The notes beneath the pieces are model-generated. The model was given only the letters and a program-made list of their open reading frames with translations. It was not told the origin of the DNA and did not search any database. A program made the position numbers and the translations under genes. From Paragordius varius (lineage: Eukaryota > Animalia > Nematomorpha): a stretch of 64,000 bases of DNA. This document shows, one piece after another, positions 16,298-63,100 of the stretch (position 1 is the stretch's first letter; every line of letters begins with the position of its first letter). The stretch lies in the NCBI GenBank assembly GCA_964247055.1, contig OZ176055.1, positions 6,014,001 to 6,078,000 of the forward strand. Direction: 5' to 3'.

Positions 16298-19200
16298 ATG
16301 ACCAAATATTCAAAAAAGACTAATAAGTAATTATATTTAATATTTAGATTAAACTATCATGGACAGCAAAATCAACTTAAGGATTTAGCAACAACTTTGA
16401 AAAAATCAGAGGGTAAAATAGCATTAATTATCTCATCATAAATTATTAAAACCAATCATTCTTTAATAAAATGAGATATCTTTTATTTTTATATAGATAT
16501 ATTACTACCAAGATGTTTAATTATACGGAAGGATCACAAAGGGTATGGCTTAACTGTTAGTGGAGATAATCCAGTTTATGTTCAATCTGTTAGAAAAGGT
16601 TTATATTTTTTATAATTAATAGATGGAGCTGCCGATAAAGCTGGTGTCAGGGAAGGTGACAAAATTATTAAGGTATTTATTACTAAATGCTAATTATAAA
16701 ATCTTTGAATTGTTGCAATAAAATATCTTTTTCCAAATTATTAGGTAAATGGGAAATTGGTCACTCACGCAAATCATGTTGAAGTCGTTCGACTCATTAA
16801 AGGTAAACTTTTGCAAAATTTTTTTATATTATATTGATTATAACATATTTGGATTTAATGTTTGTCGCATCTATTTCAAAAATTTTTAGTGATAATTTAT
16901 ATATTCATTATTAAATATTTATTTTGGGATAACCGCCCAATCAAAAACTTATAAATTATTTTCTAAACTTATCATTTTTTGGAATCAAGAATGATCAACG
17001 GGTTTCACAACCTATTTAAGTATATTTATTTTCAGATTTATCTGAAAATTGCACTTGAACAAATTTTAACTTTTAGGTTAAGATGCCTTATTACACAGAA
17101 ATACATATATGTATATCATTTATCTATATTGTTATTGTTTTTACGTCAAAAGATGTTTGTGTGTTAAATTATAACATATATTTATATGCGACAACAAAGT
17201 GTTAAAAAATTTGACATGAAAACCTTTAAACTATTTCTTGTATACGTTTAACTTTGTTTCGTTTTGAATATAAGAAACATCTCAGAATCCACATACTTAT
17301 AAGCAATTTCTTTATCATAATCTATTATTTCTTTTGGGACTTTTTTAAAAATATTTTAAATTTGTAGTCATAATTTGCAGTGATTTTTTACGATACCCGC
17401 TTATGAATTGAAAAGATAGGGCCTGTTTTCTGAGGAAATAAGAAAATGTTTAAAATATCGTATAAAATGGCACATTTACATGTACCATAGTTTTGTCTAA
17501 TTCTTAATTTTTTTGCATAAATTTAAACCTATAAAAAATGAATGCTCTTTTATTTATACCATTAATTATCTATCTTCTATACAATATTTTTCATAATATT
17601 ATAATTATTCCAATAGAATGAATGATATTGTAATTATTGATCTGTCGTACTTATTTTTGCATTTTAGCCATTGTCTTTAATTTGAGTCTTTAAAACAATA
17701 CATAGCATTTTTGTTGTGTCATCGTTGTGATAATTTTACTGGTTATATTTTATATCATACCGGGTCAAATACATATTGATTATTATATTGTAATGAATTG
17801 ACTGACCCTTAAATTAAAATCTTAATCTTGATTATCTTACAAAATTAATTAAATAATATCTTAATTTCCTCTCACTTCCAAGAAACATTGCATGTGGTTA
17901 GTGTACCTGCTTGTACTTTTTAATATTGAAAAAAGAACCATCCACATGCCTAGTTTGATCATCTTTAAAATAGATACATACAAACAGATATAAAGGTTTT
18001 GTTCTGTCCAATTTACCAAAGACATATTGATTAATTCGTAATACATAATGATATATATACATAAAAAGCGACATTTATGGTGTATAAATACTTTCTTTAT
18101 ATTATATCTAATTAACCATGTACAATTATAGCAATAATAAGGCTTGAGTATATACCATTTTTACCTTATTTTTTATGTTTCCATAATTTCCGATCATATT
18201 TTGTGTTTTGTTGACATTACACAATACATCTTTGTCTGTTTATTTATTTATTTAAGTTTTGAAACATTGATTAAAATGAACAATTTCTTTTCGAACTTTG
18301 CGTTTGCACATTTAAATGATATATTCATTCCTTCTATTGAATTGACAATATTGCAGGCATACAATTAGTAAAATTCAACACCTTATCTATGCTTAAAATA
18401 TATATCTATATATGTATATCATATGAAAAAAATTGAATACGACGTATATGTGTAAAAAGTGAGTTTTGATATCATAATTTTAAATTTGACTCTTGCTATG
18501 TTTAGAATTTGCGTATCTATTTCTCTAATCATTGCCTTTGCTATTGCTTCTGTATTGTATTGTCTGTGTGCGTAGTGTACGTAATACTAATGTTTGGTGT
18601 GGTGAATGACTTTTAATGACATTTTTTCCTTTCTGGTATCTCTATCTATCCTGCCTTCTTGCATCACATATTTATACCATCATCATCAAATATGCAATAA
18701 TGTTTTTTATCTGTACATATCAAATGCGCCTTTTTTGCAAAAGCTTTTCTTTGAATCATATATTTGTAAAGAATAATTACACTAACGTATGGTATAAAAC
18801 AACGTCTGTGTCCATAATTGAATAATAATATAGGGAAAAATGTTTAATTGTAACACCATTTGTTGTTTTTTACATACACTACTGGAACATTTTCATTTAA
18901 TACTTTTTATATAGGTATGAACCATATTGTCATCGGTATACTTTCTATCTTTTACAAGTTCTGAAATCATTGCCAATATTTTTTGCTTTTTACTTTATAA
19001 GTGAAAGTTGACTTTTTTGTTTGAATTGTTTCGAACAAACGACCTAGCTTAGATAGAGGTCTGCTACCACAAAACATTTATTGGCATAGTTTTGTCGTTT
19101 TATTTTTGCTATTTTATACTTTATGATCCATATTTTTGGCAGCAAGCTAATAGAAATAGTTACCTGTAGTTGTCAAATATGATAAAACGAAATAATTTGA

Positions 19201-22200
19201 GTTTTTTCCCTACATTATATAAAATTTTGTGAGTGGATAATTAACATATATTGTATTGCTTGCTATATACATCTTGAAAAACGTATTTTGTAAATTTCAA
19301 GGACGGACCTTTTTTACAATTCTTTCTTAATTATTTAATAGTTATAATAAATAACTTTTTAAAACAAAACAACATATTTTTATCTATGGTCCGTCCATCC
19401 AGGCTAAAATTATTTTTTCTCTGCTGTTGAAAATGATTTTTTTAAACACTTTTTATTATAGAGATTAATTAATTTCTCATATATTTTAATTTAGATCAGG
19501 GGTGTCCAACACTAATCGCTTAGCGGACCGCATTTGAAATATACATGGGCATTCATTATAAACGTAAGACTGTAATATGCCTATACAATTAAACAGTTTA
19601 TACTAGTTTTTGTTAATTGGGCAGAATTATTTATAATAAATTGTTTGAGAAACATCAATTTAACTAAGATTTTGTTAGCATAATTTTTTAAATTTTGAAT
19701 TTTCAAACTTTCGCGGGCCGCACGAAATCTCCCTTGATTTAGATGTATGATAAAGTTTGGTGTTTTATCCAAAAGTAGGAGATCTAAGATACAGTAGCGT
19801 ATGGCATAAAACAATGTTAGAAAGAAAAATATTTTTTTTAACTAAAAACTAGTTGTATATAGGCATATATATCCCCCTTTTTAAAAATATATTTATTTAT
19901 TCTTTTATGGACTAATATTGTTTTATTCTATACGTAACTGTATATTTTTTCTGACCAAATTCAATGATTTAATTTAAATTCTGGCAGATAAATAAAATAA
20001 TACATAAAAAGTTGTATGTTTTTAATTGTTTATTTTTGTTAAAATTAAATATAAAACATACATAATAAATAAAGTCAACAATTTGTCAAGAGGCTCTATT
20101 TATTATTATTATAGCTTGCTGCGTCAATTATATATAGGAGAGAGTGAGTTATGTCCTCTTTTTTATATAATATAAAATTATTTTTTTGCAGCGCATATAT
20201 TATTCGCATCTCAACCATTCTATGTAATAATTAATTAATTATTAAGGTCATTTTATATGACAATGGACGTATAATTATGTAATGTTACAGTAGGGTATGG
20301 TAAAAAACAACAAATGTTGTTTGAAATTAAACAAATTATTTCCCGTATTTTAGCATTTGTTTTTATGGATTAACTTGTATGTTCATACTAAATTGTAGGC
20401 TTAGTCTGAAATAGAGAGGGGTAGCTCAATTTTTTTTTAAATTATTGAAGTTTAATTTTGAAATCAATAAAAAATAGTGGAACGCTTGCGGATATCTGCG
20501 AACTGGTTTGAAAAATTCTTTGTTTGTCATTTTGTAATTTTTTATGGTCGGAGGTCTGAAAATATGGGCTATTTTAAACGGACTAAAATTTACTTCGTGG
20601 ATGCATTCATTAAACATTTAAGTATATTAAACCGAAGCATTGCTCTTTAATATAATTTGGCCGTCATAAATACAACCTTATTTCCAAAAAAATATTGTTT
20701 TTTTATTTAAGCTAAGCTATAACATTTGCATAATTAATCAAGTATGGTAATATATATGTGCTGCTTATTAGAGGTATGGTATGCGTAGATTTCACAATAT
20801 CTGCAATGGAATTTGTAATATAGTTAACTCACACTTTTATTATTTTTTCTATAAAATCTATCACCTTTTGCAAGAAAAAAAGTTCATACCTAGCTATATC
20901 ACCTAAAAAATATTTGCTTACAAGATGACACTCTTTATCTTTACGATTGTTTTATCATATTTTTACCTTTCGGCTTTAATGTGCTAGTTTTTTTTCACAC
21001 ATCATTAATAGTTTTGTTTGAATAGATTGTCTGTCGTTCGAATTTCAAATTGTTTTTTGAACTAATTTTTATTTTTATCTACCTCTATTTGAAAAAATGG
21101 TGCTAATTCCTTTATTCAAGTAAAATTTATATATAAAGATATCTTTCATATGATGCGATTTTCTGAAGTTTTAATATTATTTGAGCAACAGGCATTGTAT
21201 ACAAAACTAATTTGTAGTCTAGTAAACATCTAAGAGTTTTGCCTTGTAACTTATTTCATTGGAGTTTTTAACTACAAATTTTAAAATTATTTAAAAATTT
21301 TCTCCATTTTTAATTAGATGAGTATGCCTTAAAATATTTAAAATTTTATAAAAGTTGTGCTACATTAATTATCGGTTAACACACACAACACACAGCACAG
21401 TTGGATAGATGGAATGATGAAATGATTTGGTTATTTTAAAGTGTTTGGTTTGGTTCTGCTTGCAAATAGAAGCACAAAACGTATCCGTTTTTAGTTTATA
21501 ATTTTAATTTTTTCAATTTTTCCAGTTTTTTTCTCTGCATAAAACATCTTTCTAAAATTTGATTTAAATTATTTTTTTTCATTCCGGTATCATCATAAAA
21601 TGTATGTTATGTTCTCTCTCTCCGAATATTGTAAATGCTATCTATCTATATTGATTTATATCTTTTTTCCAGTGCAATGCAACTCATATCTATAAGCCAC
21701 CACAAGTTTTCTTTCTTCCTGTGATGAGGATTGGAAAAATTTAAAAATAAAAACTGAATATTTCAATTTTTAAATTTTTTGGTTAAATTATTATCGTAAA
21801 TATATGTTTTGTAATCCATGATTTTATCAAATCTATTATTCTATCATCATATGAAAATTGAGAAGGTATTCTATTATATATTTGTTCGATCATTTGTTAA
21901 TTATTATTATCATTTCTTTTTACATCATTTACTGACTAGATGTAGTATGTATGTAATAAATATGTATGGTAAGATATTTGGAATTTGAACTTTAACATAG
22001 AATAAAATAAAAAAATCAGTAACTAACCAGCAGTGGTAGAATTTATTTTATTTAATATATTAGGTTTTTTCAGTTTTATGGTAAGATTTTGTTTCACTAA
22101 CTGGTTGTTAGTCAAACCTTAATTTGACTCAAAATATTTTTTTAAAATCTAAATTTGGTGTCCACAGTTTTATAAATGAATGATTCTTTATACAATTAAT

Positions 22201-25200
22201 TATTATCGACATGGCTTTTAGATAAGATGTATTTTAATGATTTGTGATGAATAAATGATTAAATCATATAACATGGTAGTATCCATAAGTTTTAAGAATT
22301 TAAGTAATATACACTTTTATAGATTGGTCGGTAGTTTTACCGTAAAGGCTAAGCACCCATTTAAACCACAAAGAAATTTATTGATTTCTTTTATTTTCAA
22401 TTTAGCTTCATCGTATGTCGCATTGACCGTTTTGGGAGGATCATCCAACACTCACCTACAACAGTTTCCAACATCCTACAATGACAATGTTAATGTAAAT
22501 TCATCAACTTCAAATACTTGCATTAACACTAACAGAAATAATTTCAATTTAAGCGAAAAAGATTCCTCAGATTTCCAAATCATAAACAATTACCTTTTAC
22601 GACAAAAAGATCAACAAGGCGTTAGATCACACCTAATTCAAAATAGGAGCGGTTCACAATTTTTAACTACAGCAGTCTCGGGTAATGTCAACGGAGATTA
22701 CACATCCGCATTCGATGGGAATTGTGTTCGAAGAGCTGGTGGTGATACCGCGTCACCCTTTTTAACACCCCAAATTGGGCCCAAGCATGGGGGAAATGCG
22801 CGATTGCTGTTATCATTAAACTCAAATGGAAACCTTACGGACAATAATAGAATTATTAATAATAATAATTTTAACAAAAATATTGACTCCAATTATAATA
22901 ATAATAATAATAATGGGAAAGCGTTTCAAACAACAAACTCGTTTACTTCCATAGATGATCATATTACCCCTAAAATTTCATCCGTTATAAATCCTACTTG
23001 TCAAACGTTCACATCAAATAGAAACGGTAAAGATACAACTGTTAATGGTATACTACCGACGACTCGACTTTCAAATACAACGACACTTTTACCCAAAGAG
23101 TCCAAAAACTCTCTTAATAAGGATACTGAGGTAGTTATTAATTATTGCTTCAAAATTAATTGTAAAATGAGTTTTTTAACTAGTAATATTATACCATTTA
23201 CAGTTCGAATTTACCCTAAAACAATTTAAATTCACCCTTGAACAATTCAAATTTACCCTCGAAAAATTTAAATTCACCCTCGAACAATTCAAAATCACGC
23301 TAAAAGAAATTACGTGTTTTTTAACAAAATTACCAATATTTTTTATAGAAAAAAATAAAATTACCTGGAAATATATATAATACTGAAAAAATAATAAACC
23401 ATGCCATAAGATTAATGATGAGTTAGATTAGCCCGAAAACACATAATTTATTTTAGGGTGAATTTGAATTGTTCAAGGGGGAATTTGAATTGTTCGAGTG
23501 AGTTCGAATTGTTCAAGGGTGAATTTGAATTGTAAATGGTATATAATAACTGATTGACAGTTTACACATATAGTCAACACGATAAAAAGTAATCTTATTC
23601 AATACTTAGTATGCAAATACGTCTAACTAAACATTTAAATTTTCACAAAGAAAAATGTAAAAAATGAAAGTGGTTCAAAGTTAAAAACTTTATTATTTAA
23701 TAATTTAATTTATCCACTCGTCGTTATATACCATTTACAGTTCAAATTCACCCTTGAACAATTCAAATTTTTAAATTCAAATTCACCCTTAAACAAGTCC
23801 ACCCTCAAACAATTCAAATTCACCCTAAAATAAATTATGTCTTTAAAATTAAAAATTATCTATATATATTTCTACTTTTATGAAATGAAATTTTGTCTAA
23901 AACTAATATAATACTGAAAAAATAATAAACTTAGTCATAAGAATATATGCTATATTAATGATGAGATATATTAGCCCGAAAACACATAATTTATTTTTAG
24001 GGTGAATTCGAATTGTTCAAGGGTGAATTAGAATCGTTTAAGGGTGAATTTGATTTGGGGTGAATTTGAATTGTTTGAGGGTGAATTTGAATTGTTCAAG
24101 GGTGAATTTGAATTGAAAATGGCATATTACATTTTTATTGTATCACACTTGATAAAAGCAAGCTTAGTTTAAATTTTTCTGGACTGGCCGGACTCCAAAC
24201 CCATTCAAAATACTTGGGTCTTAGAAATTTTTTAATATCAACTTTTTTTATTCAAATTTTTTATTAAATTTAAAATATTTTTACCATATTCAAAATTTTG
24301 CATACGCATGATCTAAAATATTAATAAAGTAATGGAAAGGGACTTTTTTGATAAAATCATTTATTTAAATAATTCTCGTTTGAAAAAAATATTGATTGTG
24401 TGTTTGTGACAAATTATGATAAATTTATTTTTTTTTCGCTTTAATTTTTTACTGATAATATTAGCCAACTGGGGATTTTATTCAGCTTATATGTGTGTGT
24501 TTTTTTATTAGTAAAAATAATGAAAAAAATGGTTAAGGAAGTATACCGCTATAACTGATATATGCATTAAACTATCTAAGCCAATTTATTTATATACGTT
24601 TTTTTTCAACATACTTATAGTTTATTAATTGTTTTTATGATCGTTTCGTATTTTGATTTAATTTTGCTAGAATGTTCTTAACCAAAACCACAGTTCAGTA
24701 AAAGACCAAATTTCAACGTTAAAAAAGTTGTATAATCAAGAAGCTATTATATTTCAGGTATATCTATATATATATATATATACTTTTTTATTTAATCATT
24801 TAATTTTTTTATTGGTTTTTATTGACATATGATGATGCATGTTAGAATTTGCAAAAACAGTATCTATATAATCCATCCTACAAACTTAAACAAGAGCTAA
24901 ATGCGGTCAATCAAAGGTTAAATTCTATCAACGAAAATATAAATTCACTCCTAAATAATTATTCGATGTCAACCACCGCGGCCATATATAATCCGACACA
25001 TTCGTTGGTAAGTTTATTAGTTTTTCTCCCTTAAATTTTTTCATTGCGCAAATTTTTTTATAATCAAATCGATTTAATTTATTTATTAATGTAAAAATGG
25101 TGTTTTAGGATCTAAATTGTTCAGATTTACGGCGAGGACCAACCTATATGGACAACAATAAATTAATGGGTATGCGTCTTTTGATTTAGCGACAATAAAA

Positions 25201-28134
25201 ACTTTTGTTAAATTATATTTTTTGCAAAAAAAATCTTTTTTTATCTTTGATTTATTCATAGTGAAACATGTATTGCAAATTGTAATTGTATTTACAAAAT
25301 TAATTATAATTAATTAATGGAAAACAAATTTATTTTTATGTAATTTTTAAAACTTTTTATTTTTTTGATCGCACAATCATTATTTGTTGATAAATCAATT
25401 AATTTTAATTTGAACAGAGAATGACCATGACATGGAAATGACAAATGGATTGTCACAATATCAATTAAGAGGCAACAAAGAACAACAAAACAATATGCTT
25501 GATTATGACGAGGAAAATAATTTAATTAAACAATTGCATAGACGTTCTACGGGATCAGTTTCATCATTGGTATGCGATTAATATTTTTTTTCGTAAATTT
25601 GCAAGTCATTTTTTGGTAGAGGTTTGGCAGACTCATAAGAATGGTTTGTTTTTGAGTAATTTTGTTAAAATGTATTCAAGTATATTGTAAATTTTAAAAA
25701 ATAGTTAATTAATTTATAATTGCCAAATGCACAATTTTATCATTATCGGTGTTAGTTTTTGACTGTTTCAATACAATTTAAGTCATGACCCATTAATTGC
25801 AAAAAAAGGAAAAAGGTGATTCTAAGGGGTGTCCAATACCAATGGCTTCGCGTCTCGCATTTTTGACTTAAAAAACCGGCAGGCCGTAATATATGATAAT
25901 TTTATGGGCCTTAATAAATATCTTTCGAGATTTCGAACATAATACTGGGAAATTAACAAAACAATTAACTCTTAGCCAATTCATTGCCAAAATTTTTAAA
26001 GGCTTATTCCGAAAATTGGTTTAAATACGGAATATCTAACTGTATATTCTTTATTTTATTTTATGATATGATCTAATATTAGTTGGATAAGTCAGTCCAT
26101 GATAAAAGTGCTCGAAATTCTCTCCACCTTTCCGACCAAAAATGCAACAAATCCAATAATTCTATGACAACATTCAATGGGCTTGGGAGTTTAACGGTAA
26201 CTCTAATTTCATTTTTGAAAAAATAAGTTTTTTTATTTAAAAGTTTAAAAATAATACAGAGAAAAACATAAATTCTAAAAGAATTGAAATTTGTTAAATT
26301 ATAAAAGTATAATTACGATTCTGTAATAGCTTGAGTGCGTTATTCTCCATTTTTTATTTTGCACCACAAATAACGATAAGAATAATTTTTAAAATCTAGT
26401 TTTAAAAGTGTATAGTTGTCTTTTATAGAATATTATTTGTCTTTGGGTTTTTTTCGTGTTGTCCGTATAACTTCAATTTTTAGTGTATTATTTAATTCTT
26501 AAAAAATTTTATTACATAGGTATTAAATAATATCTATTCCACACGAGAAGAGGAAGAAAATGCATTTATACCAAATTCCAAATCCTTTACGGAACATACA
26601 GCTAATATTGAACAACAAATAAGCAAACCTTCTAAGGAATTTCATTCAACAGAACAAAACCAACACCGATCTCAAGCACCGTCCCCCTCAAATTTTGATC
26701 ATTTTTATGAACCTATTATTGAACATTATAGAGGTCCTATTTTAATTTAGATTTAATCTTTATGTTGGTATTAATTGGTAGTCATAATAATAATAGGTTG
26801 GCCTTTATCAAATTTACAGTAAAGTTTTTTTTTCGGAAAAAATATGCCATTTCTAAGTTTTTGAATCCAGTTTCGAAACATATTACTAATCCATGACAAA
26901 TATGTAAGGGGATAGTTGAATAAATATTTTTGTCACGTTAATTTAAAATATTTATTTGACTTTGGGGTCAATACATTTATTTATTCCTTACTACAACAGA
27001 CATTCGAAATAAAAATTACAACAAAATTTTATCGTTGGAAGAAGAGGACGAAGATGAAATGGATCATGAATCCATTATTAATAAGGTTTTAATTTTTTTT
27101 TTTATTTTTCAATATTGTTCATTTTTTAACTGCTTACTCATTTATAGAAAATAATTAATTATAAATCTGATAAAATGTATAAAATAAAGTTTTTTATAAC
27201 ATAATAATTGATTAATTCTCCACAAAAACAGGGAAATTCCGGACCATTTGCTACGTTTGAACGATTAAAAGCGAGTCCAGCACATTTAGCCATATTCCTT
27301 AATTACCTTTGTTGCAATAGTGATCCCAATAGTTTGGTAATAATATTAATTATGTCATTTAATTTTTACCTAAATTTACAAATATAAAAATATTAATTTG
27401 AAATATTATATTATATTTTTCAGTTATTTTCCCTAATTTGTGATATCTATGATCGTGGGGGTTTGAAAGAACACCAATTATGGGCTTATGAAATACATTC
27501 ATCATTCATTGTACCAAATGCCATGTTAAAAATATCTATTCCTGACTCTCATATAATTCAAATTGGTACATACTTTATGCAATATTATTAATATATGTTT
27601 GATTTGATTGACCTTGGAATATATATATATATATATATATATATCTTTTATGTTAGATGATGTCCTTATGAAATCATGGACGGATGAAATTGCCATGAAA
27701 AATATATTTAGGTCCAGTAACCAGCATATTCAACAAGATATTGAGGAGAAACTTAGCGATTTCCGACTCAAAAGACAATTAGGTATATTGAAAAATCTTA
27801 TATAGCTTCAAATTACCGTTTTAAAACATAATAATTTGTAGATATATAAATAATTTTAATTTTACTTACGTTTCCCCTTATATTATACAAATTTGTAGGA
27901 TTAAGCAGTATATATGGTGATAATCCTTCCCTTGATAAGTTATTGGCTCCCTCAAACCCTTTGTCTGATAATAATAATAATCTAACATCCAACCTAACAA
28001 ATAATGATGAGTTATCTCGACGCGTCCTCTCTATACGGATTGCTGAACAAATTTACTTACAAATTGTGGATAAACTTATTGGGTTTTGGCGTGAAGATGT
28101 GGAGTTTGATGGAGTCACTAATACAGAGTATATC

Positions 28135-28167
<33 letters not shown>

Positions 28168-31100
28168 GAATTATGATTCGAAGTCGTTTTTTATATATTT
28201 AAAATACTTTTTGTTCTGGTATAGATGCCTACTCCTTTCAGCCGTTCTAACTTTGGCACGGTGTGTGTTGGAACCACAATCATCGATTAATAATATGATT
28301 AGTAAAGTAGAAGTCCCATCCATTGATGATAAATGCAAGCATAAAAATACGACATCCCATCATTCGAACATTAACACGGCTACAAAACCATTTCAATCGT
28401 CCAGTAACCTGCTATCATTCGTTAATAATATGCCCTCCCTTCTTCCATCTTTTTCGTCGTCGACACCTTACTTGTTGAATGGTTTGTCACCACCTTGCTC
28501 TAGTGTACAAAACAACAGCCATCCTAACCATAATAATAGTTTTAACAATAACACTGATATTATATTGTTACTGGTGAATAAAATCCCAACCCTTTGTGAT
28601 GCGCGAGAGTTTGAACATTTACCCATAGTATATCGTCGACTAGACTCTACATCGGTTCCCAGCAATAATAATTCACGGGGACAAAAAAATAGTAGTGGAA
28701 TATCTCACAATCTCCCAGCTAAATTTATACGATTCCCTTCAAGTTCAAACTTTAAACGCACTTCTGCATCCAACAATAATCAATTAGCAACGAGCCAAGG
28801 ACCAAAAATGGAGGATGAAAATAGCACATCTGTTGACGAGCTTGTTGTAAGAAATGGTGGGGTATTTTTATCGCGCATTGAAGCAACTATCCATCCTAGT
28901 CAGCAGGAATGTAAAGTTAAAAAGCAACATAAATCCATTTCTCGAATGGGTCATACCCTTACACCTTGTCAGTATATTCGGTTAACGTTTTGTGATAGGT
29001 GTCATACCATTCTACAGGGTCTTCGTCATCAGGGATACCAATGCTTAGGTTTGTCCCTTTCATTTTTTTAGAAAATTTTACCTTTTGGAAAAATATTTTG
29101 TTATAAAGCTAGTTAAAATAATATTTTTTTCCATAAGAATCCGTTTGTTTTCTCCTAATATTGATGAATATTAAAATTTTTATATAAAGCGGTTATTTAA
29201 ACTCAATACATTTCTTATCTTTTGTAAAAGTACCCTCTGTTAAAAACTATTTATACAGTTAATTTTTGAACATAATCTAAGGTTTTTTGAAATTTATTAA
29301 GTTTAAGTAAAAAAAAATGTTTGAAACGACAATGTTTTATTGCATCCTTTATGTTTCTTAACCAAGCAATTTTTTGTGAATTTTTCGGGTTTTTAAAATA
29401 ATTTAGCCTTTCCTATTTTTAATACCAAACCATTTCGTTCCCATGATATAGATTGTCAATATAATGTTCATCACACATGCATTGATGATATCGATGAATA
29501 TTGCCCTGGTAACTTAACGCTACCCGTTACTTCGTCACATCAAAATTTTATTAGCAATGAAAACAATAACAACGAAATTTTGCCCAAAATGCGCAATAAT
29601 CAGCAAATGCATAATATTATTCAAACCGGAAATAAACGACGTGAAACTAAAAGCATGCTTTTTGATAACACTCAAATATTTCAAACTACACAACCGTCCT
29701 CTGAAGGTTAGCACAATATACTTTTGTAGGAATGATCATTAAAGTTATGGTTAGATTAGAATTGTATTTTACAAACATCAATCGATGTAGATTTATAATT
29801 TAGTTGTAGGTGAGATAGATTAGGTTTTAAAGACACTTTTTGCTGCATTGTACAGTTATATCTTTTTCAATGCATTATCCCACCATTTTTATCATTTACA
29901 AGTTTATTACCCCTCACTATATATCAATTAGCTCCTTCTGATCATCTTGCATTTTTTTTCAAATAAAATTTTAATTTTTAGGTTATAATCGTTAAAGTTA
30001 AGTATACCTTTCTACAAACTTCTGTTATATTTGTGGGTATTATACCCTTTTAATTAGCCGATATTTATCCTTTATTCTTTATAAATGGAGGTGCGGATCC
30101 TCTATATATTCGTTAATGATATAATATCATAAATTAAAATAAAATTTTGGAGGAATATTATTTTCAAAGATGCTTAAATTTAAGTATTTTCTAAACTAGA
30201 TACTCCCGCTAACACCTCTTCCATCACAACTCCAATGACATCAAATACATCTGCTATCGGTTCATCTACATCATCCGTTTTTACTAACCTTGCGCGGTAT
30301 CGAAAATCAACGGCCGATCGACTTTTACCCAATTTTAGACGGGAAAATACGACGACGATCGAAGAAACAATCACCATTGAACCGCAAACCCAAACTACCA
30401 CAGTGACTTCATCAATGACACAAAAGACCGGACTGTTGACTAAACAAAATTCTTTTGTGAGCAGCACTTCCACGGCGGCGGCAATTAATATGATAACTAA
30501 TTCATCTTCTCATGTAAACAGTAGTAACACTAGTAGCAATATAATTCCACAAACCTTCAACAAATGGTTCCATTACAATAGTAGCAGTAATAATCATAAT
30601 TCTGGCCTGGTTAAAAACAAAAATATCAAGCAAATGACAACACAACCACAGCAGGGATCAAATGTCGCATCTTCGATTCCAGTTACGACGCAACAAATGC
30701 AACCTGTGTTACGGTCAGAAAGTATGAAAGCTAAGGTATGCTAAGAGTATATAGGGATAGTTTTTTGAAAGAATAATTGCGAAACCGTGTTGTTCTATAA
30801 AGAAAATGGTCCATTAAGAAATGAAATTACAGTAAAAATTAAAAAACGATTAAAATTGTTTTGTGAGGACAATTTTTATGAGTTGACGCTTTTCATCGCT
30901 TTATATGAAAATTCGATCGCTTCATTATTTTTTAAGAGTTTTTGTGCGGTTTCTCTGTTCCAATCAGGTTTATATGGAAAAATTTAACGTTATCTCACAT
31001 CTTTTTTAGGATTTATATTTATCAATCAGGTATTTTGCCTGAATTGCTTTTTGATCAAATATGAAATATTTTTGCATTGGAATATTTTACATTTGATTAT

Positions 31101-34100
31101 TAATCTATTATTTTAGGGTGAAACCAAATATTCCAAAAAAGAAAACGGTGGTGTTCCTCGATCTAAAAGGTATAATAATTATACCTTTAAGTTTTAAACG
31201 TTAAACGGTATAAACTCTAATATATATTTAAACAATTTTTTTCATATTTATTTTATATAGTGATATAGCCCCCAAAGCTGCCTCAACTGAACAAGTTGCT
31301 GAAATTACCGATTTACCTAAACCGGTTCTTATTAGGCCTTCAAAAAAGTAAATATGATTGATAAATGATTTTAATTTTATTCACAATTTTTGACGACCGC
31401 GACATAATCATAATATTTTTGAATACTTTTATGTTAGATCTTTTGATTTTACTGTGTTTGGTGCGTCCTCATCCTCCAAATCAACTAGTATTGAAGAGGA
31501 ACCCCCAAACATTGGTATGTATGACAAACAAAAACCTTTTTTAAAACTTAATATTATTTTAACCATTTTTTGAAACGTTTTCCTTGATATTTTTGGGTGT
31601 AGTTTACAAAACGACCTAAACTTTTTTTGGTAATGTAAATATAGTTATCTTGGTAAAAAATTAGAGTGTATTATGAGAAAGCTAAGTTTATCATATAATT
31701 CAGTTTATTACACTAGACAACAAATTTTTCTGCCACTCGAGTTTTTTGCATTTTTTGATATTTAATATCATTTTAACAGTAAATCTGAAATAAAAATTAT
31801 AACTCGTTGGAAGAATTTTGTGTAATTTGATTTTTTTGATTATGCGCCCTCTTTATCAAAATTTTACTAAAAAATGTTTTTATTTGAAAATATATAAGTA
31901 ATGCCCATTTGTAATATATCATTCGAAAGAGTATTAAAAAATCTATAAAATGTATACTAATATGTATTACATCGACAGTTAATATTGGACACAAAGAGCG
32001 ACAAACGCGCGAAGCGAGAGCATTTTTTTTAATTATTATATTTTTAAAACTAATGGATGAAAATAGCTCAAACTTTGTTTAGATGGAGATGAATGTCCAA
32101 AAAAGTTAACACAAGAAAGTTTTTTTTGATTAAAACATTTTTTATTGCTTTTATATCACTCAAAACAGCCATTTTTAAGTTTTTTGTTTTTTAAAAATTA
32201 CCATCTCATCAATATTAATTTATTTTCTTGACAAGGCTGATAATTTCGAAAATTTAAAGATAAAAACAAAGTTTAAGGTATTTTTGATCTTTTATAGCCA
32301 TTATGTAATAAATTTACAGTTATAACTATGCATTTTTGTATCCACTAGATAAAATATTTATGATAATAATAATTTTTATTAAAAAAGCAAACCAAAAGCT
32401 TTTCCAAACAATTTTTTAAATTAAATACTAATATAACCCTAATAATTATATTAAAATAATTTATATGATTTTCAGATTAGTTTGTCTGTTAAAATTCTTG
32501 ACTTATTTAAGGTTTGAAAATTTGGACCATTTAAATCCAAATAACTTTTACATCCGATTGATTTAAATGACTTACTACCATTTAAAAGATGCAGTTTTTT
32601 GCGCTCTTTCGAATGATATAAAATACATGGCTTCATATCTAAAACTTTAAATTTTCGAAATTTCAATTTAATGTTAAATCGGGGCCAAAAATTATCGATA
32701 AACTCTAATATAAAAAAATTCTTCCATGTAAGACCAATTTTCTTTTCAGATATACTAATTATGTATTTTAATCAAATAAATTTTAAATTTACAAGAATGG
32801 CAGTTAAAAAAAGTTAAAATTTGTTGTCTAGTGTTAGTTAAAACAAAGCTAATTGCTTCCCACTATGTGTTATAATATTATATACGGTTTTACAAAGTTT
32901 TCTTTATAATTTAATTACATTTAAATATTTTCTTTAATGTTAAAAAGTGTTGAAGTTTTAAAGTACACCTAACAACACCCAACATACTATTACTCCCTTT
33001 TCACATTTATTATCAAATTTTTGTTTTCGAAATCGACCACCTTAATAAATTATACATTTTTGTTCTTTTATTTTTAGAATCAACCATTTCTGAAACTAAA
33101 AATGTGGGTCTCCTCTCTGCACAACCAAATACCGCGGCTCTCATTAGTACTACAGTTCAAAGTACGGCTACCTCATCATCAATAACGCGGTATATGGAAA
33201 TGCTTTCATCAAACACTAATCGAAACAATCAAACCGCAAATGCCAGCAACAATTTATTTATCATAAGTAATTTGCTTATGCTACAAAAAGAGGATCCTGA
33301 CCTTGAAATTGTACCTGAAATACCGAATTGGCAATCTGTCGTTGATTGGGATTGTTTGAAGCGCATGAAACCCAAGGAAGTTATGAGACAAGATGTTATA
33401 AATGGTTTGAAATTCATAATTACATGTTTTATTTTACCTTACATTTATAGAAAGATTGAAATTATACTGACAAAAATTAAAAAAAAATTAAGGACGAATA
33501 TTTTTTAAAAGCTTGATATAACTTATCGTTTTGGGTTGCAAAATAAGGAATTTAAATTTAATAATACAAATAAGGACCACCTGAATGAGTCTATTGAGCT
33601 GGCTCATTCACAAGGATTATTAATCCAGGTGAAGGAGCTTACCACATCATCTTGAGATAGAGAATTTTTGAGCCTGTTTTTTTTTCAGGATTAAGGATAT
33701 TATACCCCCCTCCTTGGGCTACGTAGCAGGACGAGATTTACGCTAGTATTCATATGAAACTCTTGAAAAATAAATAACATTTATTTTTTTATAATTCCTA
33801 TATTATAACACATTTATCAGCGTATATTGTTCTTGTTTTGGAGTTTTCTTCTGATGCTTAACAAATGTTACCCATTTTTTTGTCTGTACTTTAGGTGGTT
33901 TTTTTTTCTTGAAATTCGTTATTTATTTGGCTCGTGATTTTCAAAATTTTTACCATTTTTATTCATTATATTTAATAAAGATTCTTACTATAAATAATTT
34001 AATAAAATTCGACTTACAAATAGATGCAGAGAAATGTTATCCATATTGATTAAAATTTGCTTTCTAAAAAGTTTCAAAATCGCCGCCTCATAATCTCATT

Positions 34101-37100
34101 TAATTCCCTTAAACATATTTTTCCTCGCAAGCCATAATCCATTTGAATGAGTCAATTTTTTGGCTCATTCACATAACTCTCTAAATACAGTAATTAAAAT
34201 TATTAAAAATTTAAATTTCAACCATATTTTCGAGATATATTTGTAAAAAAACTTGATTTTTTATATTTATCGTTTTGATTGCAAAACAAAGAATAGAGAT
34301 GTAAATTGGCAATATAATATATTATATGTTTCACAATCGTAATTATAAAGGTTATATAAACACAAATTAAACTTTTAAAAAGTATGGTTGTCTTTATATA
34401 AAAAACTTTTTTTTATTTTTGCTCCGTATATACATTTGGTATATTTGACCGCTTGTAAATAGCAGTAGGCCCTATAACTTAATAAAATATATGTTGTAAT
34501 TAAATCAAACAAAATGAAGTTAGCCTTTCAAATTGGTTTTCACTATTCTTTTTCTTTTATTGAATTTGATAAATTTATATTTCGCGATAAATGTATCTTT
34601 ATATATAATCATTAAAAATATGTGTTTATGTTTGATATCACATTTAGAATTGTTTCACACTGAAAGAAATCATGTCAGGAATCTCAAAATCCTTGATTAT
34701 ATCTTTTATCGTCCCCTTAAAAATGAAAATTTGATTTCGACTGAACTGTTGGATGCCCTATTTCCTAACCTGGAGCAATTAATAAAAATACATAGTAATG
34801 CTTTTATAATTTATTTTTTTTCTGGTTAAATATTTAAAAACTTATACATATCACATTTAATTTTTGAAATGTTTAGGTGAATTAAACCAAAAAATGAAAA
34901 AATTGAAGGAACAAGACATTATAATTGAATCAGTTGGTGATTTGCTCAAAGAATTTGTAAGTATCCTAGTTAATTAGTTTTTATTTAATCAAATAAAAAA
35001 TGAAATTATACTGACGTAATGTAAAAGTAACAGGCATTTTTTGAAGAAAATCAACATTTTTTTTAAATCTTGATTTAATACATTTCACCTTTTGGTTGCA
35101 AAATAAGCAATAGAGATGTAAATTTATATTACGCTCAATTATATAATTCATATTGTAATTTAATAGTTTATATGTGAACTATCAAGGTTATAAAGTTGTG
35201 GTGTTTTGAAATGAACACTTATTTTTCTTTTAGTTAGTTATTACTTTATTATTTCGATTTTAACTGTAGTTTGAAGATGGAAACGGTGAAACTTTCCAAG
35301 AAGCCGTCATAACTTTTTACAAAAATCAAGTTTTTGCCCTTGAAGCCTTAAAGGCTCGCCAACGGAAAGATGCAAAACTCAATGCATTCCTAAACGATGC
35401 TGAAAGCAATCCCCTTTGTCGTCGATTACATTTGAAAGATTTGGTCCCTTGTGAAATACAACGCCTTACGAAATATCCTCTACTAACCGATAATATTATG
35501 AAATATACCGTACCTGATACGGATGAATACAAGAATCTCACAACGGCATACGAATGGTGAGTTGACGTTTAAAAGTTATGTTAGGGGTGGTTACAATCGC
35601 AATATTCTTGAGTCATAAAGATTTATATAAATAATAAATATTCTTTATAAAAATCTCGTATGACATATTTAACCTCTCAAAGTAATTTCGAAAATACTGA
35701 TTTTGTGAACAAGAACGTTAATTCTCCTTAAAAAGTTTATTCGAAAATTTATTAAATACACTATTCAATTTCGATACATAATAGTATTTTTTAACAATTA
35801 GGTAATAAATACTCTTTCTGTATATATAATAGTTTTGGAAAGTTCGCCAATTATATTTTACGATTAATCATTATTATTAATGTAAAATATTTATTTTTTA
35901 TCACCATTTTCCCTTTCCTTTTTATAGTTCACGGTCTATCTTAGCCAATGTGAATGAGGCCGTACGAGATAATGAGAATCATCAGCGATTACTTGAGATT
36001 GAAGCCAAACTCGATACTTTACCGCTTGAAAAAGCGTATGAAAAAGCCCACAATACAACTAAACTCCATGAAATTCGGGCACTTAAACTCTCTCATAAAC
36101 GATTAGTTATGGAGGGAGCACTAACTTGGCGTTACGCTAAAAATAAGACCTTAGATGTCCATGCCTTACTTCTCGATGACTGTATCTTACTTTTGCAACG
36201 ACAAGATGATAGATACGTCCTAAAATTCCAGGTATAAAAACGTATAAAATGGTTTTTATATACGGTGTAATTTTTTTTTTATAAATGGAAATGAAACTTA
36301 AGTTGTATTATAGCCTAACTACGTAGGTTAAACAATCGCTTGCCAATGGCTGAATGTATAAAAAATGCAGTTCAACTAACTCTGACATACTCACACAGAT
36401 AATGTTAACATCATACTTTATTAACGTGATTAATTTTTAAGCACTAATTTTTTTGTTTATGGTGGCAGTGCCCATACTCTAAAACATAAATTTCCCGTAA
36501 TCTTTCAGGTACACAGGGGTGTAAGTTACAAAGTTTGCTTTTTACATGCCGCCCGCCCTCTTTCATAAAAATCATTGAGAATTTTTTTGATTCACTAAAG
36601 GTGGTGACATTATCAGTAGGATTATATATTTTGCAGACAAAATTTATATCCAATTTTACGCATTTTAAAACAGGTTATGGCACCCACATCAAGCTACATT
36701 GTACCTCCATCCTCTAATCTTAATGCCCTATCAGCCTCAGCGTCTAAGGATGAAACGTCATCAGCACCAAACCTTCTCTCATCATCAAAACTACTGTCCC
36801 ACAGTCCAGTCATTAAACTTAATAATGTACTGACGAAAAATGTTGCCACAGGTAAATATATACTTATAAATTGAAATATTCTTAATTATTTATATATGGT
36901 ACTACTTTTTAATATATTTCCCGAAGTTTGCATATAAATATATATTATATTTACTGTTTCAATTATCTAATTTTTGTTTTTTTAGATAAACGAGCATTTT
37001 TTGTGGTGAGCACGGTAGCCGAAGGACCTCAGTTATACGAGTTGGTTGCATCCACATCCAATGAACGAAAAATGTACACATAATTTTAAATATTTTTTGC

Positions 37101-40100
37101 AAACGCAGATAATTTTTTAAAATTGTATTATGGCATCACTTGATAAATAATGGCTGAATCTGTTTGGTGTTTAGATTGTTTTTAAATTTCAAAATATATG
37201 TCATTTCAAAAGTTGTTAATAAAAATATGGTATGAATTTTAATCTGTGGAAATTGTTGTATTTATGTCTTAATTAAAAACCTAAGGCGCTAAAATATATA
37301 TATATATTTAAATAAAAAACTCAAATCTCCTCAATATTTAACAAATAAATCTTGTTGTATTGTCTTATTCTTTAATTTAAGCTCCTATTTTTTAATTATT
37401 TCCCATATTTAGTTGGTTAACGCGGATCGAAAAAGCCATTGAACGTCTCAAAGTGGCCCATTTGCGAAACTCTTCGTCTTTTATGCCTAGCATGCCAAAA
37501 CCTAGTGGATCAAATGTTGGGAATAATGTCACTTCAGCGGGTGCAAACAAAAAATTATCGACATCAACTGCGCTTGAAAATACTAAAACTAATTCCGTTG
37601 ATCAATTTATAACAACGCAAACCACAGGTATACAATTTGAAAATGTGCATTGCCATATATGCTTGGTTTTTTAATTGTAAATATGAATCGATTCCTAACA
37701 AATGATTTTAATCACAAAGTTAAAATTATTAACATAAATTTAAAGACTGATATATAAAAAGAAAACCATATTTTCTCAGAACATTAAGAAATTATAAGTC
37801 TACTTTTTTTGGTTTATCTTTATTTAAACTAATATCTGTGTGTATTAGAAAACGGTGATAAAACTATAATCTTAAATCCATCCGTTCAATCTGTGTACAA
37901 TAGAGCAGGGACCCCTAGTCGACATTCTTCTGACCCTATATGTTCTGCTATAGCGGTAGCCACAAATGAAAATCATAATGAACAAACGAATCCTCCTTTG
38001 TTAACGACACCTGCCACAAATAATCACGAAATGAATGGAACAGAAGACACGTATTCACCCAAAACACCTACTATCCATAAATCGTATGAAATATAGCTAT
38101 TATTAAATATTCAAAGTTTTAGAATCGTTTTTCAAATGTGTATGTTTTGTTAATTTTTAACTGGCTCATTCAGTCAGATTTTTTATTTTTTTCTGATGAT
38201 TTTAGACTTTAACTCTATGACTTGAAATGCTTGTTTGCATAAGTACAAAATAAAAAATTTTAAAAAGTCAAATCACACGAGTGTATACTTGTTTTTGGTG
38301 TAAACTTTATATTTAGCGTATCATTTTGTTTATATACAGTAAAAATTGAAGTTATACTATATACTATACAAAGCTTAAAAACCGGACAAATATAATTTTT
38401 GAATTATATAATTACAATTTTGAAATATATAATTAGATGTAAATTTAAATACCAATTCCTAAGTCAAAACAATACAATTTAATTTAAAAAATTAATTTAA
38501 TTTTATAAAAATAGTTGTCGCTGTCTTTTATAGTTTATACGTTTTGTCTTTATAATTTAATTCACATTTCATGTTTGCAGAAACTCATTTGCCGTAGCCA
38601 TGGTTAAACGAAATGATGATGAAGGTGAACCACAAATAAACCCAGAGCTAGAATCCACAAACAATAATGTACAAGAACAATCGTTTGAATTGATTGAATA
38701 CATAAAAACGCCACAAATTGTTCAACCTTATGAGGTTAGTATACGGGAACCGGTACGGTCAGATAAAGCCAGACCCATCCTTAGCCTGTATGAACAACTC
38801 CGTCGGGCGGATAGCATGCTAGATTCTGCCCTGGTGCGAAAACGATCCGTTATAACTGCAATATTGGGAATGTCACTGTCTTCAGATCAATCATTGACCG
38901 CCAAAAATGGTGGCAATGATTTCATGGAAATCGAAGATTTGATTGATGGTACTGAGAATAATAATAAGCAAGGCGATGTGCAAAATAAGAGTGATAAAAT
39001 GATGACGAAAGATGAAAAGAATGTACATATGAAAACGGTAAACAGAGAAACTAACTCGGGCCTAGGTACATCAATTATTTAACATTATTGTAATATGTTA
39101 TGTAATAGCCAGATTTTTTTAAGTTATAGACTTTTTATAAATTCGACATCAGGTTTTCGAAATAATTTTTATGAAAATCCGAATTTTTCGGTTGTGAAAT
39201 CGAATCCATTTATATGTATGAGAAAAAAAAAGATAATTTATCACACACTTTTTTCTTTCATTATATAGAAACGGAAATGGATAGCCTAACCCTTAATGCA
39301 AACAACACTTACGGTTCACCATCACCGGCTCACATGAATGATACTTGCAAATACATTTTAGCCAGAGCGCTGGCTCAAGCTCGAAAACTGGAGAAATGTG
39401 TCTTGCACCTCGAAACGGTTCATGGATTACCCAATCCCCTTATGAACAAATTGGAGGAAAGTTATCATGATGAATCCTTGCCACAAGCTACAAAAGGAAA
39501 TGGTCCATCTTCTGTAACCTCGGTGCCAATTGAAACCTCCTCTATGGATGTGGCAAACTCAGCCACTACCATTATCGATAATGAAATGAATAACCAACTT
39601 TTAAGGTATTGTAAAATGCAATTACTAATTATTATGATTTAATTTAAAAAAACTTGGGAGGCGTGATGGTATTGTAAGCAGGTAGGGAGCCGGATTTTTA
39701 CACTGTGTGTGTGTGTGTGGTGTCAAAGTTTAAACCCCGATTTCACCCAATTTCGTCCGTTTTTACCATAAATAAAAATGAGAAAAAGAGAATTTAACCT
39801 TATATATTTTGTTAAAATCCTATACTAAATTATTTGGGGCTTTTATAGATTATTTCTAATGTTACTCTAATGCCCTTTTTAGTCCAAATACATTGACCAA
39901 TGGCAACAACTATGATACATTAAAATCCAGTTTGGAATTGAATGAAATGAAGGACCAACTTCTTATCATATCCACCAACATTAATTTCGAATTAGCCCGA
40001 TTAATGAAAGCATTTTGCAATCGTATGACAACATATTAAATCTATAAATAATGTCTTCATTGTTTTATTTAATGCTTTTAAAACACTAGAACCCTATATT

Positions 40101-56285: not shown

Positions 56286-56293
56286 ATCTAAAT

Positions 56294-59831: not shown

Positions 59832-62554
59832 TTAATCTTGAGGAAACTTTACCCCTATAATTTTGCGACATTCTTCAATCAATTTAGCGAATGTTAGGGT
59901 ATCTTTATGCGTTACGAGTGGACTTTCTTTCAATCCTATAAAAAATAGGAATAATTAATAATTTAATATGATAATTTATGGAAATAATAATGCTGTTTAA
60001 AATTTTTTTAAAAAATTCTTGAGATATCATAGTAAAGTTATAAAATACCAGAAAATATTATATCAACTGAAATTTAACAAAAAGCATAAAGTAATAATAC
60101 TTTGTCAATAGTTATCGTAACTAGTTTCATGTTGGTTAAAACTTACAGTACGACACAACTATGACTAGGATAAATGGTTTTACATATCACTTTATATTTT
60201 CTGAGATATTAGTTTAATTTGCTATTGGTTATTTTCATTATCTTATTTTAACTTTTTAGTGTTTCCAACATTCAAACATATATTTTTAAAAATAAAATAA
60301 TTTTTTCAACAATCTATGTTGCCCAATAGCTTTTTATTGTTTCCAACAATCAAACATATATTTTCAACAATCAAATAATTTTTCCAACAATCAAAATATG
60401 TTTTCTTTTAACTTTCTAGTATTTCCAACAATCAAATATATATTTTCAACAATATATCACGAAATTTTCAAAAGTTTAAAATAATTTAATACAAAAGACT
60501 CAAAACTTATTTCACTTACTAATCTTTAAAAAATCATAAAAATTTTACCAGCTTGAATGCAACGTTTGACTTCATTCGCCTCATATAAAAATCCGACACC
60601 ACTATCATACACCGGTTTCCCCTTTTCAGGCGGGAAAGGTTTCTCCATTAAAACGCCATTGATTTGTATTTTATCGCTACACCAAAACGGTGGATGGATC
60701 TATGAGATTTAAAGAATAAATAAAGCTTTCGTAATAATAAATAATTTGAAAATATTTATATTCTAGATAAATTATATGCAACCTTAATAATTCCCTTTGT
60801 GCCGCATACTATCCCTTCACGCGGAACTTCAGTTGTAAACGCAACTTGAAAAACGGCCATTCTTTGACCACTATATTCAAACGTTACGCTGTCCAATTCA
60901 TCTACGCCTAAAAGAAATGTAAAATTCTGGAAATATTGTAATATTAAATTATAATTGGGAATTTTTTGTGAAATCAAAACTATTTCGAAAAAGGGTTTCA
61001 AACGGTTGTTCGAAAATTTTCATTATTTAGTTAAAGGATAGCAAAGATATTTATTGCTTTTGTGACTATATATTGGAAGAATTCATATTCATCAAAAAGA
61101 ATAGACTAAGGTTTAACCAAGAATTTATAAATTTATATCACATAACCTTAACAGAGGCAAAAAATGATAAATAAATTATGTGTATTCTAAATCACTGGTA
61201 TTAAAAAGTAAATACAAGCGATTAAAACGTTTTTTAAAACCAAAACGCGGGCAAAAAATACATTTAGCAAATTATTACGATTACTGTAAAATTAATAGGA
61301 AGTTAACATTCTCTATATATATTAGTATTATTTGTTATTTTATAAATCAAATATTTATTTCAATCTCTTTGAAAAATATCATATTAAATTTTTGTAGCTA
61401 TTAAGTTTTAATTATTTCAATTATATCAGATTAGGATATATTAAAATGGATTAAAATCAAAATTCTCCAAAAACAATTGAATAGAAACCATATTTTTGCA
61501 AAGAAAACCCTGGAAACAGAATTGAAACTGTTCTGTCAAAAATTTATTTTAAACCCGAACCTAAGCCCAGGTAAATTCTACCTCGAAAATTAAATTACTA
61601 TGCAAATTTGGTAAAAGAATTGTTGCGTATATATAATACCATTTTCGTTAAGAAAGCCAATCGGAGTAATTTTTTTAGGCATTTCCCCAAACACCATTTG
61701 AGAAAACGCGATGCAATATACTCCCTTATCCATCATACAACCACCACCAATTTCAGGCTTAAAAAGACAAAATAATAATAAAAAATGAATATTGATTGAA
61801 GACAAAATATAATTTATTCTCTTAATTTTATCATTGAAAATCAAAAAAAGTAAAAATTTTTATTTTTGGTTAAAAACCAATTTTTCAATATATAAAATTA
61901 AATAAGTTAGGTACATGATAAAGTCTTTGCATTTCTGGTCCGGATGCCGATCCAAATGAAGATAAAACAAGTTTAACATCACCAATCGTACCCTTTTTAA
62001 GTTCTTCTCTCAATATAGCTTGTGTAGGAAAACAACGGGCCCACATACCCTGATAAAAATATAAAAATAGACAATTAAATAAGAGCAAAAAATATAATTG
62101 TTGAGGATATGTACCTCCATAAAGAAGACACCCTTTTGGTTAGCCAATTTTATCATTTCCTCTGTCTCACGATAATTCATACCCAGGGGTTTTTCGCACA
62201 AAATATTTTTATTGTATTTAAGCAACATTTTAACAACTTTAAGGTGCTCACTATTAATGACCGAAACATATATTACGTCTAAATATGACAAATAAAAACA
62301 AACCTAATTCAGAATCTTTGCCTAATTCTTCATAACTTCCATATGCTTTTGGAATTTGACGTTCAGAGGCAAAAGTTTTCGCTTTTTTCAAATCTCTAGC
62401 GGCAACGGCCATAATCTATTATAATAAACATATTTTGCACCTTATGTCCATTATCAGGGTCACTTAAGAGACCGATACAGAAATCATTAGAAATTCTACC
62501 AGCGGAACATATTCCCCATCTCAATGGTTTATCAGCGGAGGATGAATCAGCCAT
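59832..62554 (-). CDS. DHDH: Trans-1,2-dihydrobenzene-1,2-diol dehydrogenase-like (Gfo/Idh/MocA oxidoreductase), 8 exons, 340 aa
   Basis: Exons 62554-62441, 62415-62304, 62278-62115, 62049-61915, 61757-61640, 60907-60783, 60699-60549, 59935-59832 (1023 nt). Motifs [31 protein letters not shown]|[44 protein letters not shown]. Confidence 0.93.
60243..60455. repeat. Degenerate tandem repeat (TTTCCAACAATCAAACATATATTTT units) in the last DHDH intron
   Basis: Three longer units at ~60260, ~60340 and ~60420, plus shorter TTTCAACAATC subunits. Confidence 0.7.
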
Positions 62555-62632
62555 TTACAAAGCGTGATAATGAAAAACTAAGGTTATTTTTACAACCCAT
62601 TCAAAATACCTTACTTAAAAACAATTTTACAT

Positions 62633-63100
62633 ATGAATATTACCACTGCTGAATTAAAGAAAAAAGCCTTTTTGCGAAGGAATGCGATAGAGATTTTATA
62701 TAAAATGCTACAAATCACAAGGTTTGAAGAGAGAGAATTAGAATCATTTGTAAATTAAGCTTATAAATTAAGCTACCATACATTGAGCGGCAGGATTTTT
62801 TGGATTTTATCCTAGAAAGATCTTTGGATCCTATTTGTGGTAATCCGTTTTGCACAAATACCGAGGTTTACAAATTTAAATAGTAGCGAGTTAATGAAAG
62901 AAAAAGCAAAGTATAAAATAGATAATTCAAAGCAAAAATTGTATTTATCCTCTGAACTTGAAAAATTTTGTAGTGTTAACTGTTACGAAAAAACTTATTC
63001 ACGATTAAATGCCATACCAGAAGTTGCACTTTGGCTTCGCCCCGAATGCCAAGCTTTATTGCAAAATTATGATTTTGAACACGATATTCAGCGCATTTAA
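62633..63100 (+). CDS. RPAP2: RPAP2/Rtr1-like putative RNA polymerase II CTD phosphatase, minimal form, 3 exons, 139 aa
   Basis: Exons 62633-62749, 62773-62865 and 62891-63100 give DFLDFILERSLDPICGNPFC..KAKYKID...EKFCSVNCY...PEVALWLR, with all four Zn-binding Cys. AATAAA at 63118-63123. Confidence 0.8.

Follow-up and report, generated by a model that had tools for sequence, protein, structure and literature searches.

Candidate spliceosomal introns of 23–25 nt beside kilobase introns in a 64-kb window from Paragordius varius

Whether an animal gene can carry introns of about 25 nucleotides (nt) next to introns of several kilobases is the question raised by a 64,000-nt stretch of DNA from Paragordius varius (Nematomorpha; contig OZ176055.1, positions 6,014,001 to 6,078,000 of the forward strand), hereafter the window, with a guanine-plus-cytosine (GC) content of 22–32%. 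An earlier sequence-only reading of this DNA had listed six tiny segments that would have to be removed before the conserved proteins encoded here could be read. All six were found where that reading had placed them, each opening with GT and closing with AG (6/6), one acceptor being GAG. On the strength of sequence comparison, we consider that these segments are very probably genuine U2-type GT-AG spliceosomal introns, shrunk to ~23–25 nt in a hairworm-like lineage from ancestral introns of hundreds to thousands of nucleotides. The evidence supports their coexistence with kilobase introns, even within one gene.

The need for removal held for five of the six segments, tightly in the DHDH-like and PDZ-RhoGEF genes and less tightly in an RPAP2-type gene, while the sixth, a 21-nt candidate, was compatible with it. 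The five supported micro-introns measured 23, 24, 25, 25, and 25 nt, all less than 30 nt.

Reading frames across the short segments

The spliced chains were assessed piecewise: exon pieces were searched separately against solved structures, and the residue numbers on both sides of each junction were compared. Alternatives were enumerated as every frame-keeping GT/GC..AG removal of 13–150 nt around each junction.

The DHDH-like gene (dimeric dihydrodiol dehydrogenase, Gfo/Idh/MocA; Pfam GFO_IDH_MocA) lies at 59832..62554 on the minus strand and has 8 exons encoding 340 amino acids (aa), with introns 1 to 7 of 25, 25, 65, 157, 732, 83, and 613 nt. Intron 1 (62416..62440, minus strand, 25 nt, GT..AG, phase 0) is flanked by sequences matching residues 3–30 and 31–67 of monkey DHDH (PDB 2o48) without a gap; residues 11–37 of exon 1 correspond to 3–29, and residues 1–35 of exon 2 to 31–65. 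Intron 2 (62279..62303, minus strand, 25 nt, GT..AG, phase 1) falls within an Asp codon that corresponds to residue 68, and residues 1–53 of exon 3 correspond to 69–121. When both 25-nt segments were removed, the chain ran continuously through 30/31 and 67/68/69, with zero residues gained or lost.

The PDZ-RhoGEF gene (ARHGEF11/12, DRhoGEF2-type) occupies 16298..40706 on the plus strand, with PDZ matches at its 5′ end and C1, RhoGEF (DH), and PH_16 domains in downstream open reading frames (ORFs). Its 5′ introns measure 21 (the candidate), 84, 24, 72, and 5603 nt. The 24-nt intron (16599..16622, plus strand, GT..AG, phase 1) contains an in-frame TAA and TAG. Its removal gave a gapless alignment with the PDZ domain of ARHGEF12 (2omj) over residues 6–36, residue 37, the split codon at 38, and residues 39–56, and the 30-nt alternative would cost two aligned residues. 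The 5603-nt intron of the same gene starts 180 nt downstream, which bears out the earlier statement that micro-introns stand alongside multi-kilobase introns.

The third gene, a small RPAP2/Rtr1-type zinc-finger gene at 62633..63100 on the plus strand (139 aa, 3 exons), matches Pfam RPAP2_Rtr1, human RPAP2, and Kluyveromyces lactis Rtr1. Beyond intron 1 (62750..62772, plus strand, 23 nt, GT..AG, phase 0), exon 2 begins 2 residues ahead of the Pfam match (profile positions 2–29) and also aligns with K. lactis Rtr1; the 38- and 44-nt alternatives remove aligned residues. Intron 2 (62866..62890, plus strand, 25 nt, GT..(G)AG, phase 0) skips AGs at +18 and +21. Exon 3 corresponds to profile positions 36–67, and its residue 5 aligns with residue 114 of human RPAP2. 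Among AG-ending removals, the 25-nt segment alone leaves both zinc-finger cysteines in place, with the K-x-K-Y-K-I block aligned to residues 114–119 of human RPAP2. It leaves the loop 2 residues short of the Pfam profile, against 9 for a 46-nt alternative (62866–62911) that is still a possible form of this intron. All other alternatives listed would cost aligned residues or a cysteine that binds zinc, or would bring in residues unrelated to the homologues. Judged by the Pfam and PDB alignments, support for the two RPAP2 junctions appears weaker than that for DHDH and PDZ.

The 21-nt candidate (16327..16347, plus strand), with its favourable GTAATT donor and TTTAG acceptor, would join a 29-nt first coding exon, with its ATG at 16298, to the next exon of the PDZ-RhoGEF gene. 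That next exon lacks an in-frame ATG of its own, and a TAA at 16328–16330 closes it upstream, so the removal would supply the ATG. The segment is compatible with an intron but unproven; a distant upstream exon could equally use the same acceptor.

Across the re-derived gene models, 5–6 micro-introns stood beside 8 introns of 65–5603 nt, and exons had 39% GC compared with 15–23% for introns. The lengths that the sequence-only reading had given for the longer introns were recovered (65, 157, 732, 83, and 613 nt in DHDH; 84, 72, and 5603 nt in RhoGEF), and so were its positions for them, except that of the 65-nt intron: we place this intron, number 3 of DHDH, at 62050..62114 on the minus strand, with re-derived GT..AG ends. 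The micro-introns are clustered and 5′-proximal, being introns 1–2 of 7 in DHDH and introns 1–2 of 2 in RPAP2; in the 24-kb RhoGEF gene, the 21-nt candidate and the 24-nt intron fall within the first 330 nt.

Intron positions shared with other animals

When DHDH exon 3 was compared with 1.84 billion representative proteins, the matches included P0016, a 338-aa protein annotated as DHDH of Gordionus sp. m RMFG-2023, which is ~60% identical to the spliced DHDH protein of the window. Its locus in assembly GCA_954871325.2 has 27% GC and seven introns. The window DNA is not that of Gordionus montsenyensis, for which a similar GC content of 26.93% has been reported (Gordionus genome preprint). The intron positions of the window, Gordionus, zebrafish, and starfish DHDH genes were placed on one protein alignment, and this orthology comparison covers DHDH.

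Both micro-introns of the window have long counterparts. Intron 1 is 25 nt in the window, 186 nt in Gordionus, and 1316 nt in zebrafish, and there is none in starfish, whereas intron 2 is 25 nt in the window and 3446, 2719, and 1115 nt in Gordionus, zebrafish, and starfish, respectively. In the same order, the lengths are 65, 1612, 219, and 671 nt for intron 3; 732, 3712, 1247, and 5533 nt for intron 5; 83, 865, 5757, and 1168 nt for intron 6; and 613, 1022, 844, and 446 nt for intron 7. Intron 4 is 157 nt in the window and 482 nt in Gordionus; zebrafish has none, and the starfish intron of 1213 nt lies one column on and in another phase.

Position and phase of the window introns were identical for 7/7 in Gordionus, 6/7 in zebrafish, and 5/7 in starfish. 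Both micro-intron positions, by codon and phase, were present in zebrafish, and the second was also present in starfish. Five exon lengths (112, 164, 118, 125, and 151 nt) were equal in the window and Gordionus. These positions and phases, shared with Gordionus and zebrafish and, for the second, with starfish, indicate that the two 25-nt segments of DHDH are introns of ancient bilaterian origin, since shortened in this lineage.

The gene as a whole spans 12.3 kb in Gordionus (locus 4001–16342, 338 codons) and 2.7 kb in the window, and all seven orthologous introns are longer in Gordionus, by 1.7- to 138-fold. The top short protein matches, P0003 and P0004, are uninformative: they are ORFs of metagenome assemblies, P0004 coming from marine samples, and not hairworm genes. 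For the neighbouring gene, a search with an 87-aa ORF found no RPAP2 proteins of this species or its relatives.

DNA reads and the second haplotype

Five sequencing runs contain the locus, and four of them (X1–X4) were assembled over it, X1/X2 and X3 belonging to separate studies. In the four examined runs, depth was even whether the sequence was exonic, intronic, or intergenic; two haplotypes stood at about equal depth, and a satellite was hugely deep. These features indicate that the runs are DNA. The sequence-only reading had named genomic indel errors as something that would undo it. Contigs of X1 and X3, hence of two studies, cross 62416–62440 and 62866–62890 with 0 differences from the reference. 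Neither a whole-segment deletion nor a DNA-level joint at the 62-kb micro-introns was present among the joints listed. The matching contigs, free of such deletions and joints, thus remove the assembly-error reading for the four 62-kb segments and disfavour excision at the DNA level.

The first of these two explanations holds that the segments are assembly or sequencing indels, that is, artefacts in continuous coding sequence. In its favour, the window stems from an assembly of the long-read era, the genome is very AT-rich, and homopolymer-length differences were seen at 62280 and 62432. However, the segments are 23–25 nt of complex sequence with GT..AG ends, two of them were reproduced exactly by the two studies, two stand at conserved intron positions, and the differences listed include no whole-segment deletion. 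Indels are therefore scarcely credible as the source of the segments.

The second explanation is that the segments are excised from somatic DNA rather than from RNA, like the internal eliminated sequences of ciliates or in programmed DNA elimination. The shortest eliminated sequences of Paramecium reach this size range, and nematode relatives practise programmed DNA elimination. Against this, the ends are GT..AG and not TA..TA as in the ciliate sequences, ordinary introns stand at the orthologous positions, the unexcised form is present at full haplotype depth in the DNA runs, and no excised form appears among the joints listed. We regard excision from DNA as highly improbable.

The DNA reads also brought out a second haplotype. 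In its DHDH intron 2, one extra A and two substitutions gave a length of 26 nt, with GT and AG kept. At DHDH intron 3, a contig of X1/X2 at haplotype depth had 62060–62106 (47 nt) replaced by 13 letters and was 34 nt shorter, so that the 65-nt intron of the reference is 31 nt long on the second haplotype. DHDH exon 3 of this haplotype differed by four substitutions, all at third codon positions (4/4) and 3 of them synonymous. It is precisely in these segments that the gene of a conserved enzyme accepts length differences not divisible by three, as expected of introns. The 65/31-nt allele pair also indicates that the empty range of 26–64 nt is no strict rule, and that introns continue to change in length. 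The earlier statement that no intron falls within 26–64 nt is accordingly true of the reference sequence of the window and fails on the second haplotype; the discrete class proposed with it is softer than claimed, one individual carrying both 25/26-nt and 65/31-nt alleles.

The same alleles bear on the possibility that these are decaying pseudogenes, in which the interruptions are random insertions into dead genes. In favour of this, none of the database matches was the DHDH protein of the window itself, so that no gene model for it was seen. However, the spliced DHDH frame of 340 aa is intact over 8 exons and retains its likeness to Gordionus, the allelic exon differences are all third-position, and the interruptions occupy ancestral intron positions and phases. 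Decay of dead genes is thus a very improbable source of the interruptions.

Heterozygosity is strong at 61949–62297 in X1 and X2: within a few hundred bases, several percent of sites are unlike between the haplotypes, and the intron-length alleles are part of this divergence. Run X4, which carries the same species label and comes from another sample, matched only at 90–97% over 60569–61902, with 16 differences in 178 nt of intron 4, and yielded no contigs over 61938–63191 at a likeness of at least 90%. The X4 sample may represent a divergent population or a cryptic species.

Probable splicing of the micro-introns, comparable systems and neighbouring features

The micro-introns differ from the longer introns at their donors. 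The third intron base was A in 2/6 micro-introns compared with 7/8 longer introns, which thus begin with GTA, and the weak donor GTTT occurred in 3/6 micro-introns. Every micro-intron, if retained, would give a stop within 15 codons of the intron start. Both features would suit real introns that are spliced inefficiently or in a regulated manner, so that retention and early stops tune expression, as in 5′ gatekeeper introns, and the mature pool is mixed. Very short microsporidian introns are reportedly spliced at ~25% efficiency (cited in PMC13644364). The genes concerned are of a housekeeping type and the positions are ancient, which speaks against such tuning, and we hold it to be unlikely.

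In the favoured reading, each micro-intron would be recognised as a unit, by intron definition. From candidate adenosines in the six sequences, the branch adenosine would lie ~8–13 nt before the 3′ AG, which leaves ~12–15 nt between it and the 5′ splice site. The micro-introns would work with no separate polypyrimidine tract. AGs too near the branch point would be passed over, for example those at +18 and +21 of RPAP2 intron 2; for this skipping, the usual exclusion of AGs near the branch point would serve as well as a ruler for whole-intron length. Unspliced copies would be harmless or removed, because of the early stop that every retained micro-intron supplies. Shrinkage appears to be ongoing, with one individual carrying 25/26-nt alleles of one intron and 65/31-nt alleles of the next. 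The proposal that two splicing regimes exist, and that they imply a spliceosome of specialised or reduced geometry, is purely conjectural. An Rfam scan of the window revealed no small nuclear RNA or other RNA family.

Several points weigh against the interpretation as spliced introns. RNA-labelled runs of the species contained 0.00 of the sampled locus words, and there was no RNA support at any of the six sites. The check with DNA reads covers the four 62-kb segments, and the PDZ intron lies outside that region. RPAP2 intron 2 has a GAG acceptor, and the frame would also be kept by its 46-nt alternative. The 21-nt candidate has no independent support, in a protein part without homology. The statements on branch points and a ruler rest on six sequences. 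Furthermore, open frames by themselves did no better for GT..AG than for decoy pairs: a scan by ORFs only, on both strands, for GT..AG segments of 21–26 nt with flanks of at least 30 open codons yielded 50 candidates, and three other dinucleotide pairs, for example TG..GA, yielded 51, 50, and 38. As the decoys are as frequent as GT..AG, support for the introns comes from homology and the conservation of intron positions, not from open frames.

Tiny introns are familiar from ciliates, ~25 nt in Paramecium and 15–16 nt in Stentor, and nucleomorph introns are similarly tiny. In Paramecium, nonsense-mediated decay is thought to select for in-frame stops in introns whose length is a multiple of three, and the 24-nt PDZ intron, also a multiple of three, likewise holds in-frame stops. 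Those systems are unicellular and essentially all their introns are tiny, whereas here the regime is mixed and the organism is an animal.

The sequence-only reading had placed introns of this size in ciliates, nucleomorphs, and dicyemids. This background is outdated, as myxobolids have introns of less than 30 nt (PMC13644364) and flatworms have a short class beside 3-kb introns (PMC6530080). According to Hadjez et al. 2026 (PMC13644364), Myxobolidae and Dicyema are the only animals known to have introns below 30 nt, and further lineages are predicted; that paper cites Lu et al. 2019 for the ultra-short introns of Dicyema japonicum. The likeness to the window extends to GT-AG introns of less than 30 nt in animals (medians there 22–27), conserved positions, a parasitic life, and A-rich stretches a few bases upstream of the AG. 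According to the same text, the short class there is the genome-wide median, and myxozoan genomes are compact with short noncoding regions. In contrast, micro-introns here are 5–6 of ~47 introns in the window, other introns of their genes reach 5.6 kb, and a high-copy satellite is present.

In flatworms, Ershov et al. 2019 (PMC6530080) describe microintrons with a peak at 37 nt and a second one at 90 nt, next to a peak of 3-kb introns. As compared in Opisthorchis, Clonorchis, Schistosoma, Echinococcus, and Macrostomum, they are mutually adjacent, 5′-enriched, poor in polypyrimidine, and overlooked by annotators with a high minimum intron length (PMC6530080). The window has the same architecture, its first peak being shifted down to ~24 nt, and shares with them a short class, discrete in its reference sequence, beside kilobase introns, lack of a distinct polypyrimidine tract, clustering near the 5′ end, and a large, non-compact genome (PMC6530080). 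Unlike the flatworm peaks, the short class here is 23–25 nt and the next one ~65–85 nt, with only the 31-nt allele between; flatworms are Spiralia with RNA support, whereas the present case concerns a hairworm-like ecdysozoan and is sequence-based. Human ultra-short introns of 43–65 nt, which depend on SPF45/RBM17 instead of U2AF (PMC8363638, PMC4463651), are twice as long; as a very short subset handled differently within one spliceosome system, they may be a possible model for a second regime.

The lineage is new for what is otherwise a known phenomenon, and the system as such is of a familiar kind. Newly added by the window are two 25-nt introns whose positions agree exactly with those of orthologous vertebrate introns, independent confirmation in DNA, and allelic length variants. 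We incline, by a small margin, to the view that hairworms are a third independent animal lineage with spliced introns below 30 nt and the first with these as a minority, 5′-proximal class in a repeat-rich genome with kilobase introns, arising from ongoing deletion of long introns; part of the universal-gene loss reported for Nematomorpha could then be an annotation artefact. The dicyemids and myxobolids, as the known animal cases below 30 nt, are highly simplified parasites. If the reading is true, extreme intron shortening does not need genome-wide compaction, as 5.6-kb introns are kept in the same genes. It would also offer a natural system with 25-nt and multi-kilobase introns in one transcript, in which to probe how one spliceosome handles ~12–15 nt from the 5′ splice site to the branch point.

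The default minimum intron lengths of pipelines of the STAR/BRAKER type lie at or above 23–25 nt, so genes like these three are likely to be truncated or missed, and such missed genes bear on gene-loss claims for the phylum Nematomorpha. STAR and BRAKER made up the Gordionus annotation pipeline (Gordionus genome preprint). We found no paper on hairworm intron sizes, and that preprint does not mention introns.

The DHDH and RPAP2 genes are arranged head to head, with 78 nt (62555–62632) separating their start codons, and they probably share a bidirectional promoter. No RPAP2 gene was found within 4 kb of the Gordionus DHDH gene. Inside DHDH intron 7, a tandem repeat at 60246–60454 consists of 2.6 copies of a 78-nt unit with a 21-nt sub-period. 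Its summed word depth in the DNA runs was in the millions, compared with ~200–400 for single-copy sequence, and many variant joints were present; this depth indicates that the repeat belongs to a very high-copy satellite family.

Elsewhere in the window, a ubiquitin carboxyl-terminal hydrolase (UCH domain) is represented by its C-terminal part at 1671–2267 on the plus strand, and its gene extends beyond the window start. A gene with a LicD domain (fukutin/FKRP-type) lies at 47067–49752 on the minus strand; its two large exons (414 and 328 codons) are separated by an ordinary intron of ~570 nt. A 23-nt GT..AG match of the ORF-only scan, at 48063–48085, falls inside this ordinary intron and was rejected as a false positive.

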